A program made the translations under genes and the position numbers. The notes beneath the pieces were generated by a model. The model was given only the letters and a program-made list of their open reading frames with translations. It did not search any database and was not told the origin of the DNA. DNA of 64,000 nt, taken from NCBI RefSeq assembly GCF_964188315.1, contig NC_135667.1, positions 12,462,001-12,526,000 on the forward strand. The letters run 5' to 3'. Origin of the DNA: Podarcis muralis. Lineage: Eukaryota. Shown piece after piece: positions 18,929 to 58,278 of the stretch (position 1 is the stretch's first letter; every line of letters starts with the position of its first letter).

Positions 18929-19469
18929 GTAAGAGAAGTCATGCCCATATTATTTTTCCCTCTAGGACATAGTTTTACATTCATGTTTACAGACCCCCAT
19001 TTCCTTCATATTTAAAAGGAATAGTTCACATGAGTGGATAGAGTATAATATGGCAAGTGAATATGGCAAGTGTGCTCTCATGCACAGCACCCAATTTCAC
19101 CAGGACAAAATGAAATCAAATGAAAATAATTGCAAAAAATCCAAACATCAGAATGGAGGTTATGCTAATTCTTTTTGTAATGTTTAATAAAAGTTTGGTG
19201 AAAAACTAGATTTTTTTTTAAAAAAAATTAACCAAAATCCAGACATCTACTGAGCTTCAGGTTACCTTTCCTGTCTTCATACCCCTAAATTCTGGATTCT
19301 TCTTAAATCATTGCTTTGTGTAGATATTTAAAAAAAGAAAAAGTAACATTGCTTGAAAATTATGTGAACTGATTTTGAGCTAGCAGTTCTCTTTCAGTTT
19401 TAAAGAGATATTTCTGTAGTGCACTGAATGCAAACTTCACTGCAATGAAAAAAATGTTTCTTTCTTTAG

Positions 19470-20386
19470 ACATGGAGTACTGTTTGATGTGTTCAGATGG
19501 TCAATATCCAAACAAAGGCCAAGATTTATGCATTCAAAAGAATATCAGCTTCTTGTCCTTTGAAGAACCTTTGGGGATCGCTTTAGCTGCTTTTACTCTT
19601 TCCCTTTCTTCCATCACAGCTTTGGTGCTGGCAATCTTCATTCAGCACAAAGACACTCCCATAGTCAAAGCCAACAACCGGAGCCTCACCTACACTCTCC
19701 TCATCTCCCTCCTGTTCTCCTTCCTCTGTGCTCTGCTATTCATTGGCCGACCTGAGAAAGTGATATGTCTGCTTCGACAAACCACTTTTGGCATAGTCTT
19801 CTCCGTTGCAATTTCATGTCTTTTGGCCAAAACCATTATTGTGGTTCTAGCTTTCATGGCCACCAAGCCAGGGTCCACTATGAGGAAATGGATAGGGAAA
19901 AGACTGGCTGCTTCTGTTGTTCTTTCCTGCTCCCTCATTCAAGCCACTCTTTGCACTGTGTGGCTAACAACCTCTCCTCCATTCCTAGATGTAGATATGC
20001 ACACAATGGCTGAAGAGATTGTTTTGGAATGTAATGAAGGATCTGCCATCTTGTTTTACTCTGTCCTAGGCTACATGGGTTTCTTGGCCACTGTCAGTTT
20101 CACAATAGCTTTCTTAGCCAGGAAGTTACCTGACAGTTTTAATGAAGCCAAGTTTATCACCTTCAGCATGTTGGTCTTTTGCAGTGTTTGGGTGACCTTT
20201 GTCCCAACTTACCTTAGCACAAAAGGGAAATACATGGTGGCTGTGGAGATCTTCTCCATCTTGGCCTCTGGCGCTGGGTTACTGGGCTGCATTTTTGCCC
20301 CTAAATGCTATATCATTTTGGTTAAACCTGAGTTGAACAACAGGGAGCTACTGGTAAGAAGAAATAATTCAGGCATTAGAAACTAA
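19470..20386 (+). CDS. V2R-B exon 6 (7TM domain), intact
   Basis: ctttag|ACATGGAG. Motifs [38 protein letters not shown]; TAA stop at 20384-20386. Confidence 0.96.
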
Positions 20387-38069: not shown

Positions 38070-39027
38070 TCAACTCTTTTTCAAAATGGCCAGTCTTCTC
38101 AGCGCCTTGGCTGTTGCACCATGAATATCCTTGTTCCGCAGAGTATAAATGATAGGATTAAGCAAAGGGGTGACCACAATGTAAAAGACAGCAATTTTCT
38201 TGTCACGATCAGAAGTTGAACCCGACTGTGGAATCATGTACATAGAGATGACGGTGCTATAGAACAAGGTGACCACGATCAGGTGGGAGCCGCATGTGGA
38301 GAGGGCCTTGCGCAGTCCAGTGGTGGATCTCATTTGCAATACTGAGGAGAGAACAAGCCCATAGGATATAAGGATAATTGTCAGAGGAATTAATAGCAAT
38401 GCTACTGATGCCAAGAATATGAAAGCCTCCGTGAGGTGTGTGTCGGCACATGAAAGTTTCAGCACCACCGGCAGCTCACAAAAGAAGTGGTTGATGTGGT
38501 TGGCATGGCAGAAGGGGAGGCCAAGGGTGCTCCCCACGTTTATTGAAGCAAGGAGGAAGCCACCTGCCCAACAGACCGAGGCAAGCAGGACTTGACGCCC
38601 CCAGCCCATGATACTGACATATAATAGAGGATGGCAGATAGCTAAGCAGCGGTCATAGGCCATGGCACTGAGAAGAAGACATTCAGTGCCACCCAGGGCC
38701 AATGTGATGTACATCTGTGTCATACAGCATATGAAGGAGATGGCACCATTGCCAGACAGGAGGTGAGCCAGCATCTGGGGCAACGTGGTGGTGACATAAC
38801 AGATCTCCAGGCCTGAAAGGTTTGTCAGGAAGAAGTACATGGGTGTGTGGAGGGAAGAGTCGGCCCACACAAGCATAATGATCACCAGGTTCCCCATAAT
38901 GGTGAGGGAGTAGATGATGAAGATGACCACAAAGAGTAGAATCTGTGTCCTTCGGTCATTGGTGAATCCCATCAATATAAAATATTTGATAGAGGTCAAG
39001 TTCTCATCACCTATTCTGACCTCTTCC
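38070..39027 (-). CDS. OR-3 class II olfactory receptor main exon; classical start is ATA (39014)
   Basis: ctctgcag|G GAA GAG GTC AGA ATA GGT GAT GAG AAC. Open 7TM frame with [44 protein letters not shown]. Confidence 0.9.
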
Positions 39028-39429
39028 CTGCAGAGAAAGGGAAACAGTGAAAGAGCAGCGGCACGCTCAGGAAACGGGGCATGTCTCAAACAAGCTGTGT
39101 TCCACTCATCGCAATATCGGATTGATCCCAGAACAAGCTAATCCAAGAGTGCAAGTGCACAATTGTCTCATTCCAAACTGATGAAAAGCTTCCCACAGGG
39201 CATGAATAGAGAGATATTCACTCCATTTGTGTGTCACTTTCAAATAAGAAAGGCTACCAGGTAACACACACTGCTTATCATTGAGTCATACAGGCCATAG
39301 TTGGCAAATATACTTCAAACCATGGTGTCACATCAGAGTTTTTGTGGTTTATATTTTGATTTTGTCCTGTGAATTGGCCCTGAGACCTCCAGGTATAGGG
39401 CAGTATATAAATTCATTAAAAAAATAAAT

Positions 39430-39749
39430 CATAGGCGCCAACTCCTAGGGGCCGAGGCCCCTTTGGCTCCCCCAATAAAATATTTGAGGGGACTGGGACC
39501 CCCTAAGTCAGTCATAGGCAAACTCGGTCCTCCAGATGTTTTGGGACTACAACTCCCATCGTCCCTGACCACTGGTCCTTTTAGCTAGGGATGATGGGAG
39601 TTGTAGTCCCAAAACATCTGGAGGGCTGAGTTTGCCTATGCCTACCCTAAGTTGATTCAAATAGTGTGTATACACAACGTCATGTGATGAATTATGAAGG
39701 GTAGAGCTTACCTCCCCTCCCCAATATTTTATTCCAGTTGGCACCCCTG
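39430..39749. mobile_element. hAT-type MITE containing a nested palindromic MITE (39509-39644)
   Basis: Outer TIRs CATAGGCGCCAACT / AGTTGGCACCCCTG. The inner element is a near-perfect hairpin with exact 8-bp TSD CCCTAAGT. Confidence 0.8.
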
Positions 39750-39922
39750 GAGATCATAGTTTACTGGGATAAAATAGATGTTTTAAGGGAGACCACCATT
39801 GTATGTATGTAGCCCATCTTCACAATATCCATTAAAATAAGAACATAGGCTGCATTCACACACACGCGCACACACACACACACACACAAATCCCATTTCC
39901 AAATTGAAGAACACGATCTTAC

Positions 39923-39972
39923 CACTGCTCTTCTCTTTGTTGTTTTTCAGCAACCCCCAAATAGTTATCCAT
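39923..39972 (-). CDS. Predicted OR-3 upstream coding mini-exon (MDNYLGVAEKQQREEQ-W)
   Basis: GACATGG start context; 16 codons plus 2 nt; donor GTG|GTAAGATCGTGTTCTTCAA; in frame with the acceptor at 39027. Confidence 0.7.
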
Positions 39973-41479
39973 GTCACTGGTATGTGTAACTGTAAATGAT
40001 AGCTGAGGGGGTTCCAGTCAGCTGTCTTAGCGTGAGACGTTGAACAATCAAAGGAATTGTCAGTAATCTCAAGGAGGAACTTGCTGCATCTCTCTTTAAG
40101 GGGCTTCTGCTGAGGGAAGGCAGCTCTGTGCTGCTTGGAAAGACTGCCTGTTGCAGGGCACTCGGTAGTCTAATGCCTTGTGGTTTACTTGCAGTTTGCT
40201 TCTGCTAACCTTTCTGAAATCAAATTGGTTGTGAGGGAAATTGATCAACACATGGCCCAGCCAATCAGTGCTGTGCCTCCCTGCTCTGAGCAAGTGGGGC
40301 AGGTTAGTCTAGGACTGACACAAGGTCCAAACAATCAGTGCTATGAACATCTAGATTCATCTCAAACAGGAAAATGCATGTTTTCCCTGCCTCCCATCCT
40401 AAAGAAAAAGTTATATGTATGTTTGCAGGTCATCAGGTGGTTGTCCTTCTCTCTCCTGTGAACTGGGATCCTTTAACTGGAGATGGACCACAGATAGACC
40501 ACAGAAAAAATCTTGCTCTCCTTCTGATATGCTTCTACCTGGCCAGATACTTGATGAACCTCCAACCTAGTTTTAATGCCTACTAAGATGGGGCTCAACA
40601 CAACCTGGCTTGCTCAGCTGCCTATTCCCAACAATAGAAATTGGACAGCACACCAGTATTTGTATTCTCCCTATGACATTTTGCATTCTTTCCCCCTTGC
40701 TTGCTATTCATTATGATAATGAGGACAGTGCATCTACTCCACAGGGACTCCCTTAGTGCCTTTTCTCTTCAGCCATTAATAGGTGTTTATTTCCTGAACC
40801 TCATGGGGCTTCATGTTCTTAACATACCACAGATATGGAAGAATAATTCTATGCTGACTTTGAATCAGAATTGTATGCATTGTAATAAAAACAAATAAGC
40901 ACATCTCACATTCTCTTATCTGAATGTATGCAAACTGAGCATATTTGAATTCGTCTCTGTGGGTTTCATGTTTTCCTTAGCATTCAGGGCGCATGGTATG
41001 CTCTTGGGAAGTTGCCTTATACTGAGTCAGATTATTGGCCCAACTAGCTCAGGGTCGCCTATGCTGAGTAGCAACTGCTCTCCAGAATTTCAGAAAGGGG
41101 ACATTTTCAGAGATTTTTAGTTTGCAGGTTGCAATCCGGATTTGGCTCTGGGGTGAACTGGAATGGGTGCACACCAGACCAGACTTATGAATTATGCTGT
41201 GCCCACTTGCAATTCCCAAGCAACTGGTATCCAGAGGAACAGTGACTCTGACAATGGAGATGTAATACAGACATTATTGATATCCTTATCCTCTATGAAT
41301 CTGTCCAATCCTCCTTTAAAACCATTCTGGGAGCATGTTCCATTATGAGCTGCTGCTACCAGCTATAACTCCCTGTCGGCCTTGCAAGCATTTGTGCCAG
41401 ACAAGGATGCCATGAGTACCTGACCTGCCTTCACATTCACCCACTTCTAATTTAGGAGGGTCCAGAATTCCTCCTAAAA

Positions 41480-43964: not shown

Positions 43965-44915
43965 TCAACTCTTTTGCTTAATGTCCAGTCTTTGCAACAC
44001 CTTGGCTATTGCATCATGGATATCCTTGTTCCGAAGAGTATAAATGATAGGGTTGAGTAAAGGGGTGACTACAAGGTAGAAAATGGCAATTTTCTTGTCA
44101 CGATCAGAAGTTGAACCCGACCGGGGAATCAAGTACATAGAGATGACAGTGCCATAGAACAAGGTGACCACAATCAGATGGGAGCCACACGTGGAGAAGG
44201 CCTTGCGCCATCCAGCAGTTGACCTCATTTTCAATACTGAGGAGATAACAAACCCATAGGAGGTCATGATAATTGAAAGAGGAAGTAGGACCCCAAGTGA
44301 AGCTGCCAAAAAGATGGCGGCCTCTGTAATGTAGGTGTCAGTGCATGAAAGTTTAATCACCATTGCCATCTCACAGATGAAGTGGTCAATACGGTTCAGG
44401 CCACAGAAGTAGAGAGAAGTGGCGCTGCCAACCATTAGAGAACCAAGGAGGAAGCCACCAACCCAAGTGACTGAGGCAAGCAGAAATTGTCGCCACCAGC
44501 CCATGACACTAGTATATATTAGAGGATGACAGATAGCTAGGTAGCGATCATAGGCCATTACACCTAGAAGAAGGCATTCACAGGATCCAAGGGACAGTGT
44601 GATGTACATCTGTGCCATACAACGGGTGAAGGAGATGGCTCCATTGCCAGACACGAGGCTTGCCATCGTTTGAGGCAAGGTGGTGGTGACATAGCAGATC
44701 TCTAGGCCTGCTAAGTTGCTCAAGAAGAAGTACATTGGTATGTGAAGTGAAGACTCAACCCACACAAGCATGATGATCAACAGGTTCCCCACAATGGTCA
44801 GGGAGTATATGATGAGGACTACCACAAAGAGAAGAATCTGTGTCCTTCGATCACTGGAGAATCCCACCAATATAAACTCTTTCACAAAAGTGACGTTTTC
44901 TTCCCCCATCCTCAT
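43965..44915 (-). CDS. OR-4 class II olfactory receptor (ATG 44915 or 44909)
   Basis: [53 protein letters not shown]; acceptor ctgcag|G at 44922. Confidence 0.96.
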   Translation of the reverse strand: MRMGEENVTFVKEFILVGFSSDRRTQILLFVVVLIIYSLTIVGNLLIIMLVWVESSLHIPMYFFLSNLAGLEICYVTTTLPQTMASLVSGNGAISFTRCMAQMYITLSLGSCECLLLGVMAYDRYLAICHPLIYTSVMGWWRQFLLASVTWVGGFLLGSLMVGSATSLYFCGLNRIDHFICEMAMVIKLSCTDTYITEAAIFLAASLGVLLPLSIIMTSYGFVISSVLKMRSTAGWRKAFSTCGSHLIVVTLFYGTVISMYLIPRSGSTSDRDKKIAIFYLVVTPLLNPIIYTLRNKDIHDAIAKVLQRLDIKQKS

Positions 44916-45298
44916 CTCCTTCCTGCAGAGAAAGGGCGACAGGGGAGACCAGAGAAATTATCTGAAAACCATAAGTATAGCCTTGTTTGGGGCCCTACAA
45001 GACTGGGGTCAAACCATGAACAACCATGAGCCTCAATTTCATTTTTTTAAAAATCCCAGCAAGTGTCTTTAGTTTCCCATTAATTGAAATTTCCTTCACT
45101 ACTGCATGTCTTTGAGTCATTGTGATTGTGAGAACAGCTTGTTTATTCTTTATTTAACAATCTATTGAAGTATAGATAATTGTTTTATTTTTTTTGGTAA
45201 ACCACTTTGGGTTTTCTTACAATAAATGCTATATGAATTTATATGAATGTATATATTTCTTGATGTTCATGGTTTTATTTACTTATTTATGTTAGAGC

Positions 45299-45666: not shown

Positions 45667-45788
45667 CAGGCATCCCCAATGTTTTGGGATTACAGTTCCC
45701 ATCATCCCTGACCACTGGTCCGGTTAGCTAGGGATGATGGGAGTTGTAGTCCCAAAACATCTGGAGGGCTGATTTTGGGGGGTTCCTG
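45667..45788. mobile_element. hAT-type palindromic MITE
   Basis: CAGGCATCCCC...GGGGGTTCCTG with TSD TGTTAGAG / TGTTACAG; same family as 39509-39644. Confidence 0.72.
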
Positions 45789-46839: not shown

Positions 46840-47040
46840 GCTTTGAAGACACTCAAACTCAGGACGCAAGGGAGAAACATGCCAAGAGGAAGGCACGCTT
46901 GGCAAATCCACACCGTGATCAACTCCCACCCGGAAACCAATGTCCCCACTGTGGAAGGACGTATGGATCCAGAATTGGCCTCCACAGTCACTTACGGACT
47001 CATGGTTAAAACCGTGTTTATGGAAGACAATCTTACTCAG
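46840..47040 (+). mobile_element. RTE-clade LINE 3' end with C2H2 motif
   Basis: FEDTQTQDAREKHAKRKAR...NQCPHCGRTYGSRIGLHSHLRTHG*. Confidence 0.8.
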
Positions 47041-49318
47041 CTGGGGCTGCATGCAGACGAACAAAGAAACGAGAGCCAGTGAAAGGGCTCTTGCTTTGGA
47101 GTAAGATCTGCCTCTCCCTGCCTTCTCCCTTTTACAGAAACACAGATTCTGGAACGGCAGCTGCTTGCGTCTCTTCTCTGATATACTTCCAATAGTCTTC
47201 TCTCTATGCACACAAGTGCTTGTTATGGTTATCTGATTAAATGTTCATTGGGCACTTTAGAGATAAAGATTCCCCCCACCTCTCATTTGCACATTTACAT
47301 TGTCTTGGGGAAGTGGAGAAACGTGGGGAATATGAGGTGGCTTACTAGCCAGCTCAAAGGCCTGGCCAATCAGTCATTCAACCCTGCAAAAATCCAGCTT
47401 CTCCTGAGGCAAGCGATTAAGACAGCTTAATCAATTATGGTGGAAAGAATATAAATATGCTCAGTGCTTTTCTTGGGTGCTGCCCCAACAAGTTTTGAAA
47501 GTCTTCCAAAATGAGGGTTAATCACAGCCTAGCTTATTCCACTACCTAACTCTTCTCAGCTTTAAAACAGAGACAGCAGTGGTGAATGATTTCTCCCTGC
47601 CATTTTACAAAGGCATGGTGATTCATTAAGTTAATAAAGACTGTGAGTTCCCACACTGGATCTGCTCCAATTCCTTTTGTATCTCTGGTCCCTCAGCTCA
47701 TTAACAATTCTTTACCTTTACCTTCAGCCACTTGGGCCTGAGACTTTTGACATAGCTATTAACAATACACAAGGGAAAGATTTTCCAAGAAATGAATGGA
47801 ATGGAGTATTCTAGTAACCTAGCTATGACATGTGCTCTACTAGAATACTCCATTCCACCTAATCTTTTCTCTCCTGCCACCAACAAATACTCAGTAGTCT
47901 GTGAAAACTGAGCATGCTCTCTCAGTTTTCTCTCTCTTAGGTTCTTTTAGGGTTTATGTCCGTCCGTCCCCTTAGTTTCCCTTCCACACACAAAAAGATG
48001 TAGATTCCTGGAAGAGCTGGATTTTCCACAAGCTGGTCAATAGCTCCCTCATGTTCACTGGAGACAACATTTTGCGTAAATAATTATTGGCATTCATACC
48101 CAAAACATTGGTAATGTAGAAAATGATACTGCACCCACCATCAAAGGTGAACAAAGTAGGTATAGAACTGCAAATGTGGTTTGAAAACAACCCTATACCA
48201 GGACTCCATATTATGTGTTGATTTTTAAAGACTTATTTGCAGCTTTCTTGCAAAATATCAGAGTTGTGTACAGCACTATAAGGCAAGGAGGATGTTGGAT
48301 CACACTTTAAGGATGCATTCCAGCCTGGAAAGGGAAGTATAGGAGGGTGCAGAGTAGGGCCAGTGAAGGAGGAGGCCTTGGGAAATTAGCCTATGAGCTG
48401 GTGAAATAGGCCTGCAGGTGCCTGAGTGGGGTCTGGGGAGCTCACTGCATCCCGCTGTGTCACTCAAGCCCGTGTCTGCCAACTTGAAAGGCAGAGCAGG
48501 TGTGACCTGGGAGTGTGTCCCTCCCATGGACGAGCTTCTGTCTCTGGCATGATTTGCGGTTGGTTGCTCCATAATTTGGACAATTGGCATTAATCAAGAG
48601 GCGCTCCTGAACCAACATATGCTAATGGGCTGCAATCAGTCAGCTGCCGATAGGACTGGGCTTGGCTCCTTGAAGGTATCTGAATGTTTTTCCTTGAAGC
48701 TTGAGAATCCGTACAATAGACAGGAAAGGAAGGGGAAGGGGAAGGTGCTTTGTGCTTTCTTGTGGTTTTCAAATGGTCTCCCTTTTTTCCTGTCCTCTCC
48801 TGTTATTCTGTTTCTTACTTCGGAGAAGAGAGGGAAGGCTTTTGATTTATGCTCAACAATGAATTTAACAAGGTTTTACTATGCCCTCCCCCTTTGACTG
48901 AGGCTGAATGGACTTTATTTAAAATTATTCCTGGGCTGGACTAGGAGTGCTGTTGGAGAAATACTGTTTAAAAAGTATGAACTGCTGCTGATCTGGTACA
49001 GAACAGATCTGGCAAAGAGGCTGAATTTGAGAAAAGATCTTGTTTTTAACTGTGTGCTGAGGAAGAACTCCAGAGCGGAATTTTCATAGTGGAGTTTGGA
49101 TATTCACTCTGTCAGTTATTTACAGCTGCAGCTCATACGCCGGTCTGTAAGCAGCGGGGGGAATCGAATGTGACCTTGTACCATCCAGAAAAAGACTGCA
49201 AAGAACTGAACAATGGAAGATAGCAATTACCTCTCCCAGCACACCAGGTCCGGTATAATGATGTATATGAAGGACTACACACGTGAAAAGTATTATTTAT
49301 AACATGTAACGGAGGTGC

Positions 49319-51388: not shown

Positions 51389-52487
51389 CTACAGAGAAAG
51401 GGCAACAGTGAGTCTAAGGCAAGCCATGTGTTACACATCACAATGTCAGTTAATCCCCAAACCAACCAATCCAACGCTGCGTGTGCATACTTATCTCATT
51501 TCAAATAAATGCAGAACTTTCTGCAAGGCATGAATTGGGTGACACATGCTCCATCTGCTTGTCACCTTCCAAGGCAATAAAATTGTGTCAACCAATTAAC
51601 ATGCAATGCTTAAACCAGGTTCATGCAAAGCTTGAGCAGAGGGTTGGTCCACTGTCCCTCAGACCTTGTGAGGGGCTGGACTATATTTTTTTGGGGGGGG
51701 GAGGGAGAATGAATTCCTATGTCCCACAAATTCCTACGTCCCACAAATAATGCATTTTAAATAAAAGGACACATTCTACTCATGTAAAAACATGCTGATT
51801 CCCGGACCATCTGCAGGCCGGATTTAGAAGGCGGTTGGGCCTTAGTTTGCCTACCCATGATAAATATAGTCTAAATCATGAGTTCACATTAGAGTTAACA
51901 GCCCAACATTGGTGCTGTTTTAGTTTTTTGTTGACCAATGAAACCCATGAGCCTAACTTGGCCATGTTCATTAATATCAATATAGGTACTCAGAACAAAA
52001 GTTAATTGAATTTCAACCATAATGTGCAATCAGGGTTAAGATAAGTAAAGCATGATTACACAGGTTTTATATCTGTAAATTTTCACCTCATCCAGTCAAC
52101 CCTCTTTACTTGGGTGTCATCAGTTCAATAGACAACTTTGTCAATTCCTGACTGTGACCATTTTCTTTTTATCAAATTATGGATCAAATATGACTGAGGC
52201 CAAACAGTGATTTTGAGAGGTGTGGATCATTACTTACTTCCTTAAAGCTAGTAGTGCTGCTTTCTTTGTCCAGATTTCTAACCAAATTTTATTGTGTGGT
52301 GTGTGTTTTTCTGTTCTCACATTTTATTATTTATCATACATTGCCACACATTCATTTTGATTTTAGTTATTGATATGGGGATAAATTTTAGCAGAGAGAT
52401 AGATGATAGATAGAGATGATAGATAGATATGCGCAACATTCACACACAGGCAAAATCCCAATTCCAAGTTGAAGAATATGATCTTAC

Positions 52488-52537
52488 CTTTGCACTTCAC
52501 TTTGTTGCTCCTCAGCAACCTCAAAGGAGTTTTTCAT
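52488..52537 (-). CDS. Predicted OR-5 upstream coding mini-exon (MKNSFEVAEEQQSEVQ-R)
   Basis: AGAATGA start context; 16 codons plus 2 nt; donor AAG|GTAAGATCATATTCTTCAA; in frame with the acceptor at 51388. Confidence 0.7.
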
Positions 52538-53852
52538 TCTTGTGCAACTGTGAATTATAGCTGAGTGGGTTCCAATCAGCTTTCTCATGTGAGACGTTGA
52601 ACAACCAAATGAACTTTCAGTGATCTCAAGGAAAAACCTGCTCTCCCTCTCCCTAAGGGGCTTCCACTGAGGAAGAGCTGCTTTGAAAAACAGGGTACTC
52701 AGTAGACTAATGCCTTGCGGTTTACTTCCTCCCAGAATTATGAACAAGGAGGTAGATTTTCCTAGATAAGGCAAGGTACAGGCTGAAAAAGAACAGGAGC
52801 CACTGTGTGCATTCTTGCCTTCTGCCAAAATCTGCTGCTCCCTGCTTTTGCTCCTATGCTGACAATTGACTCCCAAGTTAAAGCTGTTTCCCCTCTCCAC
52901 CTGGCTTTCCTGCTGGGCCACAGAATTTTCCCACTCTCCTGCTCTCTGTCTCTCTCACACATGCAATCTTCTGGCCTTAGTTAGCACTTGTTTGTTAAAG
53001 ATTTCTCCCACTTTTAAAGAATCAAATTGGTTGGTCAACACAAGGCCCAACCAATCAGTGCTGTGCCTCCCTGTTCTGGGCAAGTGGGGCAGGTTGATCT
53101 ATGACTGATACAAAGTCCAATCAGTACTGTGAACATCTAGATTCATCTCAAACAGGAAAATTCATCTTCTCCCTGCCTCCCATCCTGAAGAGAAAGCTGT
53201 GTGTATGTTGGCAGGACATCAGGTGGTTGTCCTTCCCTGTCCTATGAACTGGGATCCTTTAACTGGAGATAGCAGGGACCACAGACAAAGGTCTAGCTTG
53301 CTTTACCCGATTGTGGATGATTCTCCAACCAAGTTTCAATGCCTTCTAAGGTGAGGTTCACCACAACCTGGTTTGCCCAACTGCCTGCCTAATCCCAACA
53401 TTAAAAGCTAGACAGCATAGCATCCTTTTTATTGTCTCTAGGATTTTTTGCATTGTTTTTCTGTTGCTTGAGATTCATTAAGATGAAGCAACTACACCGC
53501 AGGGACTCCCTTGGTGCCTTTCTCCGAGCCATGAATAGTTGTTTATTTCCTGAACCTCATGGGGATTCAAGCTCTTAGCATAGAAATATGGAAAGATAAT
53601 GCTGGATTCAACATAGAGTTCTATGCATTCTAATCTAAAAAACAAAACAAAATACATTCCTCATTCTATTATTTGAATGCATGCAAACTGGGTATATCTG
53701 AATGCACATCCATAGGTTTCATCTTTTACTTAGCTTTTATGATGCAAGGTATTCTCATAGGAACACGGGGACCTGTCTTATAGTGAGTTAGACCAGTGGT
53801 CCATCTAGGTCAATTCTGTCTACACTGAGAAGCAGAAGCTCTCCAGAATTTC

Positions 53853-56179: not shown

Positions 56180-58234
56180 CTGAAGAGAAAGAGCAACATT
56201 GAGAAACCAATGATGTTCTCTGGGAATGGGACAACCTTAAAAACAGGTGATGTTTCACTTCCTGCAACACTAGGACAAATCCCAAACCAATCAACTTTGC
56301 ACAATCATCTCAGCAGCAAGATACTGATGGACTACAACTCCCAACACCCCTGACCATTTGCTAGGCTGGCTGGAACTACAACTTCTGGAAGGTTTTATCT
56401 CAAAGCACATAAGCCCTGCTTATTTCAATTGTTCCATTTATAACCTGCCTTTCTTCCATTATTCAGCCCAAGGTGATGGAACATGGTTCCCATGTGATCA
56501 CTCATGCAGGCACAGGCCTGACCCAGACCTTCTTGGCTTCAGCAAGGTAGTGGTCTAGTCTGCCTGCAGACCCTACAAGCCATGGCTAGAGAGAGTCAAC
56601 AGCTCCATCTGCTTCTCACCTTACAAGCCAAGAAGCAGAAAATGGCAAGGAAACTGCCTTTGCCACGTTTACTTCAATAATATGCAATTCTTAAACCAGG
56701 ATTGGGGAACCTCCAGCAGCAAGAGACCCCATGACAAACAGGGCTATTTCTGGTTGCTTTTGTTAAGTATAGTTGTTTAACTGATGCTGAAATGGGAATG
56801 CCTATGTGTGTGTAAACAAAGGTTTAACATGGAGAATGGTGAGATGTGTATTGCTAACATTGTGGTTTTTCCACAGTAGTTTTCTAAGTGGTCTCTGAAT
56901 TTCTTAATTGGTTGATAATTAACTGTTGGTTGTTCTCTTAAACTGAATGCAACCTTTGATCATGTGATGAGGCTATTGAGTTGCCAAATCACCATCTTGG
57001 AAGGGTGGTGGCCGGATTCTTTGCTCTCCAAGGGCACACAGTCTTGGGGGCTGGAATGCAGGCCATGAAGCCTGTGTGTGAGAAACAGAGCTGTGTTTGT
57101 CAGCTTTGATTATAAGTTTGCTTAATTTCTAAGATGCTGAGCCTGTGCTGGACAGCACAAGATATTGTATGGATACTGTGGAGGTATCATTTATGCTTTT
57201 GTTCTGTTTTTGAAGAATGTTCTGCAAGTAAACTTTGAATAATATTTTAATGGGTCTCGACAATGTTTCATTCCAAAAGAACCCAATTTTTTATGCATCC
57301 AGTTGTTTCAAACTGCACAGCATTAATATCTGCAATAGTTCTGCCCAGGTTTCTAAGCTGTGGTAGGAAGCCATTTAAACCAGTTTTGGCATTGTCTCTC
57401 CAGAAGCGTCTCAGGAGCAAATGTTTTGAGCAAAAAGGAAATGAACTTTAACAGGACTCCCTGTTCATAGCAACTGTTGAATGGACAGGTGTGTGCACAG
57501 CATGAGATATAAGGATTTAACCCACCAGAGAAGGTGACAATGGCTGGGTTGAAAAGAGGTGCTGAGGGACATGACAGAAGACCTGAAATCTATAGAATAA
57601 AATATTGCCTTTATAAAAAACAACCCAAAACCCCAATGAGGCAACTTGTCAACTTGGACAGGATACCAAGCAGGTTTAGCTACACAATATATATTTAAGA
57701 TCTACACTGAAACTAAATATTGCAGTTATGCCAATAGGAGTTTCTTTTCTCTTCTCCACACTCTCCCACATCACAAGCAGCACTGTGTACAGCCAGGTTT
57801 TACTGTAGGCCAGGTGCGGGGAGCCTTTGGTCCTCCAGACCTTGCTGAACTACAACTCCTTGGCCATTGACCATGCATATTGAGGCTGATGGACTTTGAA
57901 ATTCAACATTTAGAGGGTCAAATCCCTGCTGTAGACCAACAGAACTGGTCTTCCCTAAGCTTCCCTGGGGAGGATTAGATACAGTACATCAGGCAAGAAA
58001 CTAGTAACAAATTAAAAGGAAAGAGGCAGAATTGCTGATATTCTCCACATGTGACCAAATATGTTAAAATCTGTAACTTTTCAAAATAGCAAATGTCCAC
58101 AATGTCAGTGACTGGAAGGTGAGGATGAACACAATTCAGAGAACTATGAATTTTGAAGGAAATTGGTTTGGGAAGTGCAAATTGGGTGGATTAGAGCTCC
58201 TGTCTAACACCCTTATTACAGAATATCATCTTAC

Positions 58235-58278
58235 CTTCGTGCCTCTCCAAAATGTTCCTGCTTGATTGTTTCCTGCAT
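58235..58278 (-). CDS. Predicted OR-6 upstream coding mini-exon (MQETIKQEHFGEAR-R)
   Basis: GCCATG start context; 14 codons plus 2 nt; donor AAG|GTAAGATGATATTCTGTAA; in frame with the acceptor at 56179. Confidence 0.65.

Follow-up and report, generated by a model that had tools for sequence, protein, structure and literature searches.

We examined a 64,000-nucleotide (nt) stretch of the Podarcis muralis genome (assembly GCF_964188315.1, contig NC_135667.1, positions 12,462,001 to 12,526,000; here referred to as the window), which holds no N letters and carries seven olfactory receptor (OR) genes in tandem on its minus strand. At the canonical start column, ATG is found in OR-1, OR-2, OR-4, OR-5 and OR-6, whereas OR-3 has ATA (Ile) at 39012-39014. 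A reading made from the letters of the window, here called the original prediction, had claimed that OR-3 is probably functional and that an upstream mini-exon supplies its start. Exons 1 and 2 of OR-3 were analysed separately, and the RefSeq model (P0002) was used wherever a full-length protein was required. All gene features described below lie on the minus strand, unless stated otherwise.

Exon 2 of OR-3 (38070-39027) consists of G39027 followed by 318 sense codons and a stop at 38070-38072, and it encodes the entire seven-transmembrane (7TM) body. Exon 2 alone matched the Pfam profile 7tm_4 with E=1e-49 and 170 bits (cut-off 27), over profile positions 3-277 of 280, and 7tm_1 with E=2.6e-34. 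The class II OR signature motifs NLT, PMYFFL and NPIIY were present, and MAYDRC and KALSTC were found in variant forms: DRC replaces DRY at the end of the third transmembrane segment (TM3; 38646-38654), and KALSTC replaces KAFSTC at 38292-38309. An AlphaFold2 model built on an 11-row alignment (A3) had a mean predicted local distance difference test score (pLDDT) of 35.7 and was unusable, so no structural statement is drawn from it.

Around its former start OR-3 reads AGA ATA GGT GAT GAG AAC, where OR-5 reads AGG ATG GGG GAC GAG AAC. Between the upstream stop and the ATA of OR-3 there is no in-frame ATG, and the start listed for the open reading frame (ORF), at 39089, is a TTG within the intron. 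The next in-frame ATG, at 38970-38972, lies 14 codons past the ATA and is the start of a 300-amino acid (aa) model (P0122). It is also past the N-L-T glycosylation sequon of the N-terminal tail (38994-39002), which is kept in all four orthologs compared and is dropped in the 300-aa model.

The coding part of exon 1, the mini-exon, was identified at 39923-39972. It is 50 nt long and is made of an ATG at 39970-39972, 16 codons in total and 2 further nt (MDNYLGVAEKQQREEQ + TG), with the Kozak positions -3 and +4 both occupied by G in 4/4 species. It is followed by the predicted donor GTAAGA at 39917-39922 (GT at 39921-39922; GTAAGATC), identical in four OR-3 orthologs and in four OR-5 orthologs too. 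The predicted intron (39028-39922; phase 2, 895 nt) carries a (GT)n run close to the 5′ boundary and finishes with a polypyrimidine tract and a strong CAG acceptor (TTTCCCTTTCTCTGCAG, 39028-39047), the AG being at 39028-39029. In OR-1 to OR-6 the acceptor lies exactly 13 nt 5′ of the canonical start-codon position. Joining G39923 to G39027 would create the split codon TGG, after which the frame continues into the receptor body. Upstream of the mini-exon, a conserved stretch (39973-40125), presumed to hold the 5′ untranslated region and the promoter, showed ~78-82% identity to the upstream region of OR-5 (to ~52642); each of the eight copies in orthologs and paralogs retains it, with indels that are not multiples of three.

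As a control, we counted open in-phase ATG...GT candidates within the 6 kb upstream of each OR gene and found 7 to 21 of them, with 8 for OR-3. Since such candidates are common, the existence of a mini-exon is no evidence by itself, and the case rests on conservation. The exon at 39972 was the only one of the 8 in-phase candidates of OR-3 to be conserved in orthologs and paralogs.

Conservation and selection in four lacertids

The orthologous DNA loci of Podarcis raffonei, Lacerta agilis and Zootoca vivipara were compared with the P. muralis window. Both Podarcis species and L. agilis have ATA in place of the old start codon, Z. vivipara has ACA, and the protein of a second P. muralis individual (XP_028560523.1) has Ile at the same position. 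As the loss is common to three genera and to a second P. muralis individual, the ATA is not a sequencing error, a doubt that the original prediction had itself raised, and it predates the split of the genera. All four species retain the exon-1 ATG, the 50-nt length, the donor and the acceptor, and the 16 codons of exon 1 and the 318 codons of exon 2 are open in all of them, with no stop or frameshift.

The intron of OR-3 measures 865 (L. agilis), 895 (P. muralis), 1798 (Z. vivipara) and 4161 nt (P. raffonei; L003:3051-7211) with the splice sites unchanged, and large insertions in it are tolerated. In P. muralis it includes a palindromic element at 39510-39643, resembling a miniature inverted-repeat transposable element, with 57-nt arms that are 93% complementary; further copies of this element lie between the OR genes at 45686-45753, 35192-35214 and 56328-56350. 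A stretch ~1 kb downstream of OR-3 in L. agilis (L001:5850-6389) repeats part of the 3′ half of exon 2 with 92% identity over 548 nt and is probably a truncated duplicate.

Selection was tested on the 318 codons of exon 2. Between genera, the pairwise ratio of non-synonymous to synonymous rates (dN/dS) of OR-3 was 0.20-0.36, with Fisher p values from 1e-3 to 6e-8. A codon model on the four-species tree gave an omega of 0.325 for OR-3 and rejected omega=1 (2dlnL=24.4, p=8e-7). The comparison of dN/dS with lacertid orthologs, which the original prediction had proposed as a check, thus rejects neutral evolution, and no inactivating change was found in the four species. Judged from these substitutions, the body of OR-3 is clearly constrained and under purifying selection. 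For OR-5, which kept its canonical ATG, dN/dS in the same species was 0.12-0.22. The synonymous distance (dS) between OR-3 and OR-5 was 0.31-0.35 in every species, exceeding dS between genera by a factor of about 2.5 to 3, which dates the duplication of the two genes, on the sequence divergence, as much older than these genera.

The exon-1 family in paralogs and geckos

A paralogous mini-exon was identified in OR-5 at 52488-52537 (MKNSFEVAEEQQSEVQ + AG). It is in frame, the canonical ATG of OR-5 is kept, and the ATG of the mini-exon, its 50-nt length and its donor are retained in four species. The mini-exons of OR-3 and OR-5 align across 50 nt without any indel and share the pattern MxNxxxVAExQQxExQ. 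Near the mini-exons, frame-breaking indels were found only upstream, namely 7 nt between OR-3 and OR-5, directly before the ATG, and two deletions in OR-5 of Zootoca. The sole indel within any mini-exon, between OR-6 of P. muralis and of L. agilis, is of 6 nt and keeps the frame. The original prediction had described this alignment, its shared pattern and the 7-nt indel, as well as the codons at the old start, the position of the next ATG beyond the sequon and the intronic TTG, and in all of these it was borne out. A further in-frame ATG of OR-5 (52538-52588), 51 nt upstream of the shared one, is used by the Ensembl model A0A670J8Z0. It is ATT in L. agilis and Z. vivipara, with deletions there in Zootoca, and is thus restricted to Podarcis and probably not coding.

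A BLAST search of the window with the OR-3 mini-exon matched only OR-5, and the wider family of first exons surfaced through the donor motif GTAAGAT..TATTCT..AA. Five copies of the motif were found in the window, where 0.12 are expected (26088-26106, 39904-39922, 47018-47036, 52469-52487 and 58216-58234), each 0.9-2.7 kb upstream of OR-1, OR-3, OR-4, OR-5 or OR-6. No copy was found upstream of OR-2, and a (CCAT)n microsatellite (31427-31480) occupies the place of the polypyrimidine tract before the conserved acceptor position of that gene. The motif marks a family of homologous 5′ exons that was duplicated along with the genes, and the exon-1 sequences align among the paralogs and with exon 1 of a gecko.

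The members of this family differ in their coding capacity. The mini-exon of OR-6 is in frame in both P. muralis (58235-58278), with 44 nt, and L. agilis (L008:2135-2184), with 50 nt; over ~150 nt its flanks are free of indels and carry fewer substitutions than the ORF. In OR-1 (26107-26156) the ATG 50 nt from the donor opens just two codons before a stop (MT*), and the other in-frame ATG (26111) is no more than 5 nt from the donor, which leaves no long coding exon there. For OR-4, the candidate first exon (47037-47052, 44909-44922) offers only an out-of-frame upstream ATG. After splicing, the short upstream ORF of OR-4 would end just before the canonical start; two in-frame ATGs (M-R-M) are present in this gene as well. 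As exon 1 is closed in OR-1 and out of frame in OR-4, we read it as an old 5′ exon that would be coding in only some of the paralogs.

Gecko models from Eublepharis, Euleptes and Sphaerodactylus were also found to lack the canonical Met and to start upstream. The Eublepharis locus has the -13 acceptor, a homologous 38-nt in-frame exon-1 ORF and GTA at the old start. Perhaps, then, the upstream exon has long belonged to an entire subfamily of squamate ORs, many members of which would be made with an extended acidic tail, the internal ATG being dispensable and repeatedly lost (in OR-3 of lacertids and in the geckos Eublepharis, Euleptes and Sphaerodactylus). We put this forward tentatively, at a little under even chances. 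The marks of such a subfamily would be the homologous 5′ exon, the GTAAGAT donor, the -13 acceptor and an in-frame ATG 50, 44 or 38 nt from the donor. If this is true, pipelines that look for single-exon OR genes miscount squamate repertoires.

Elsewhere in the window, on the strand opposite to the OR cluster, two long ORFs (5364-6239 and 19445-20386, plus strand) resemble the 7TM exons of V2R-type vomeronasal receptors.

Interpretation and alternative explanations

It is likely, in our judgement, that OR-3 is a two-exon olfactory receptor gene maintained by selection. Transcription would begin somewhere upstream of 39972, splicing of G39923 to G39027 would remove the phase-2 intron, and translation from the exon-1 AUG would give a receptor of 335 residues, with an extracellular N-terminal tail that exceeds the usual length by 21 residues. 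The predicted N-terminal extensions, that of OR-3 included, are hydrophilic and acidic on balance, with a net charge of -1 to -3, and by the positive-inside rule such an extension fits a tail that is translocated to the outside. We infer the splicing, the position of the transcription start, the use of the AUG and the receptor function of OR-3 from the DNA sequence. The internal Met (ATG to ATA), at which most relatives start, would have been lost before Podarcis, Lacerta and Zootoca diverged, and this loss may have been tolerated because an in-frame exon-1 AUG, common to OR-5 and OR-6, already existed; an in-frame open exon-1 ATG is also kept in OR-5 (four species) and in OR-6 (two species).

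The start itself narrows the alternatives. Because the downstream ATG is missing in L. agilis, none of the four species has an ATG in the intronic sequence that is in frame with exon 2, and Zootoca carries ACA at the old start, only the exon-1 ATG could serve all four species as the start of a complete receptor. A start at the downstream ATG (38970-38972), giving a 300-aa protein, agrees with the annotated model P0122 and with the presence of this ATG in both Podarcis species and in Zootoca; we hold it to be extremely unlikely, since L. agilis has GTG (Val) here and its earliest exon-2 Met lies within TM1, since the sequon kept by four species would be lost, and since a ribosome scanning the spliced mRNA would reach the strong exon-1 AUG first. 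It is very unlikely that translation starts at some other site, either at the AUA as a non-AUG codon or at an ATG in another upstream exon. Multiple 5′ exons are frequent in OR genes (Barnes et al. 2020, BMC Genomics 21:196, PMC7055050), but only the exon at 39972 stood out as conserved among the in-phase candidates, and the ACA of Zootoca, two positions off AUG, is not a near-cognate codon, which excludes initiation of that kind at the old start. The least probable reading is that OR-3 is a start-loss pseudogene whose frame has survived through chance or through gene conversion with OR-5 as the donor. The absent canonical ATG, the DRC and KAL variants and a close paralog 12 kb away would suit it, but neutrality of the body was rejected by the codon model, and all four copies stayed stop-free in ~1% of neutral simulations, a figure that covers substitutions only, with indels not yet counted. 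Recent gene conversion from OR-5 was ruled out by the dS between the two genes, which is high in every species, together with the OR-3-specific residues common across species. The original prediction had cautioned that DRC and KALSTC could indicate decay. Both variants are present, but this concern is largely resolved: DRC is old, being common to the four OR-3 orthologs and also found in four other intact squamate ORs (among 129 proteins compared), and KALSTC is confined to Podarcis among the OR-3 orthologs, KAF being retained in L. agilis and Z. vivipara, while KAL also occurs in the OR-5 ortholog of P. raffonei and in other annotated intact ORs.

Several observations weigh against OR-3 as a maintained two-exon gene. 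In the body, dN/dS between P. muralis and P. raffonei was 0.45 (p=0.09), 5 synonymous against 10 non-synonymous changes fall on the two terminal branches of Podarcis, the allele of the window and XP_028560523.1 differ at 5 residues in a protein-level comparison, and the non-synonymous rate of OR-3 is ~2x that of OR-5. The Podarcis figures, with the change from KAF to KAL in Podarcis only, could also mean that OR-3 was long functional as a two-exon gene and is now relaxed in Podarcis, in early decay. We find such a relaxation unlikely: neither the ORF nor the exon-1 ATG nor either splice site is disrupted in P. raffonei or in the two P. muralis individuals, the counts are too few to separate an omega of 0.45 (not significantly below 1) from one of 0.3, and KAL, as noted above, is shared with intact receptors. 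The mini-exon adds further adverse points. Those of OR-3 and OR-5 show 13 differences in 50 nt, mostly non-synonymous, that of L. agilis differs from that of Z. vivipara by 0 synonymous and 6 non-synonymous changes, and the encoded peptide changes at roughly the neutral rate. For this reason, conservation of the peptide was rejected as coding evidence, and the coding argument for the mini-exon rests on necessity and on frame-keeping. Over so short a divergence, the conservation of the ATG, the frame and the openness is on its own only weakly significant. The closed exon 1 of OR-1 and the out-of-frame one of OR-4 count on the same side, and so does the fact that the RefSeq gene ranges at the OR-3 loci run exactly from ATG to stop, so that these models need not rest on RNA.

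With these points set against it, a functional OR-3 that starts in the upstream mini-exon, as originally predicted, is still supported by the conservation of the ATG and the splice sites in four species, by omega and by the failure of the other starts. OR-3 would then be a natural experiment, in which the internal start was gone before the genera split and the body is still under purifying selection; that the body is constrained in spite of the lost internal start argues that initiation in the upstream exon suffices. By extension, OR-5 and OR-6 may likewise start at their exon-1 ATGs, and the three genes offer a concrete case for asking whether a longer N-terminal tail affects OR trafficking or ligand access.

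Existing annotation and known split receptors

A word search with exon 2 alone retrieved a 335-aa P. muralis RefSeq protein with 98% identity. Its 90% cluster holds four 335-aa models (XP_028560523.1 from P. muralis, XP_053216219.1 from P. raffonei, XP_033024149.1 from L. agilis and XP_034992739.1 from Z. vivipara), plus the 300-aa model of the window's own genome. The four 335-aa models begin with MDNY..., lack the canonical Met (Ile in three of them and Thr in Zootoca), carry DRC and are named 'olfactory receptor 2D2-like' or '2J3-like'. They have the same exon structure as that proposed in the original prediction, and they are automatic and uncommented. The Ensembl/UniProt model A0A670JAD5 (P0011) fuses the N-terminus of OR-3 (LNDKIGDENL, without Met) to the body of OR-2 over ~8 kb and is an annotation chimera of the two genes. 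Three automatic annotations of the OR-3 locus, the split 335-aa model, the truncated 300-aa model and the chimera, thus disagree. The expectation that pipelines would call OR-3 a pseudogene held only in part, as RefSeq has the split model in four species and the other annotations are truncated or chimeric.

Squamate OR repertoires have been surveyed on the assumption that coding regions lack introns (e.g. PMC3342882), and such surveys would class OR-3 as truncated or as a pseudogene. Among the papers searched, we found no account of split ORs in squamates. As in unprocessed start-loss OR pseudogenes, OR-3 has no ATG at the conserved start, and single-exon finders would report a truncation or a pseudogene; unlike them, it has an ORF intact in four species, an omega of 0.33, and a conserved replacement start with conserved splice sites.

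In mouse and human, OR genes with a split coding sequence have been documented by RNA-seq, and former OR 'pseudogenes' without the conserved ATG were shown to regain a start in an adjacent exon, an arrangement conserved across mammals (PMC7055050). OR-5 and OR-6 resemble the second class of that study (e.g. Olfr55), genes that have an upstream in-frame ATG or alternative N-terminal isoforms: in both, an in-frame exon-1 ATG accompanies the canonical ATG, and judging by their sequences they could make the long form or both forms; OR-3 differs from this class in that the internal start option is lost. It is closer to the first class, to which the mouse genes Olfr1174-ps, Olfr1175-ps and Olfr1177-ps belong: there too the conserved ATG is absent, an adjacent upstream exon restores an ORF of ~320-335 aa, and the start and the splice junction are conserved among orthologs. 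The lizard gene departs from this class in being from a squamate and not a mammal, in that its junction is predicted here from sequence and its start loss is dated only by sharing in three genera, and in that its exon 1 is a member of a homologous 5′ exon family with paralogs and gecko. Each of the first-class features examined here was nevertheless found in OR-3, as far as the sequence can be read: no conserved ATG, an upstream exon with predicted GT/AG sites, and conservation among orthologs. What we describe is not a new gene structure; it is a lizard gene whose predicted layout is known from mammals and already modelled in RefSeq.

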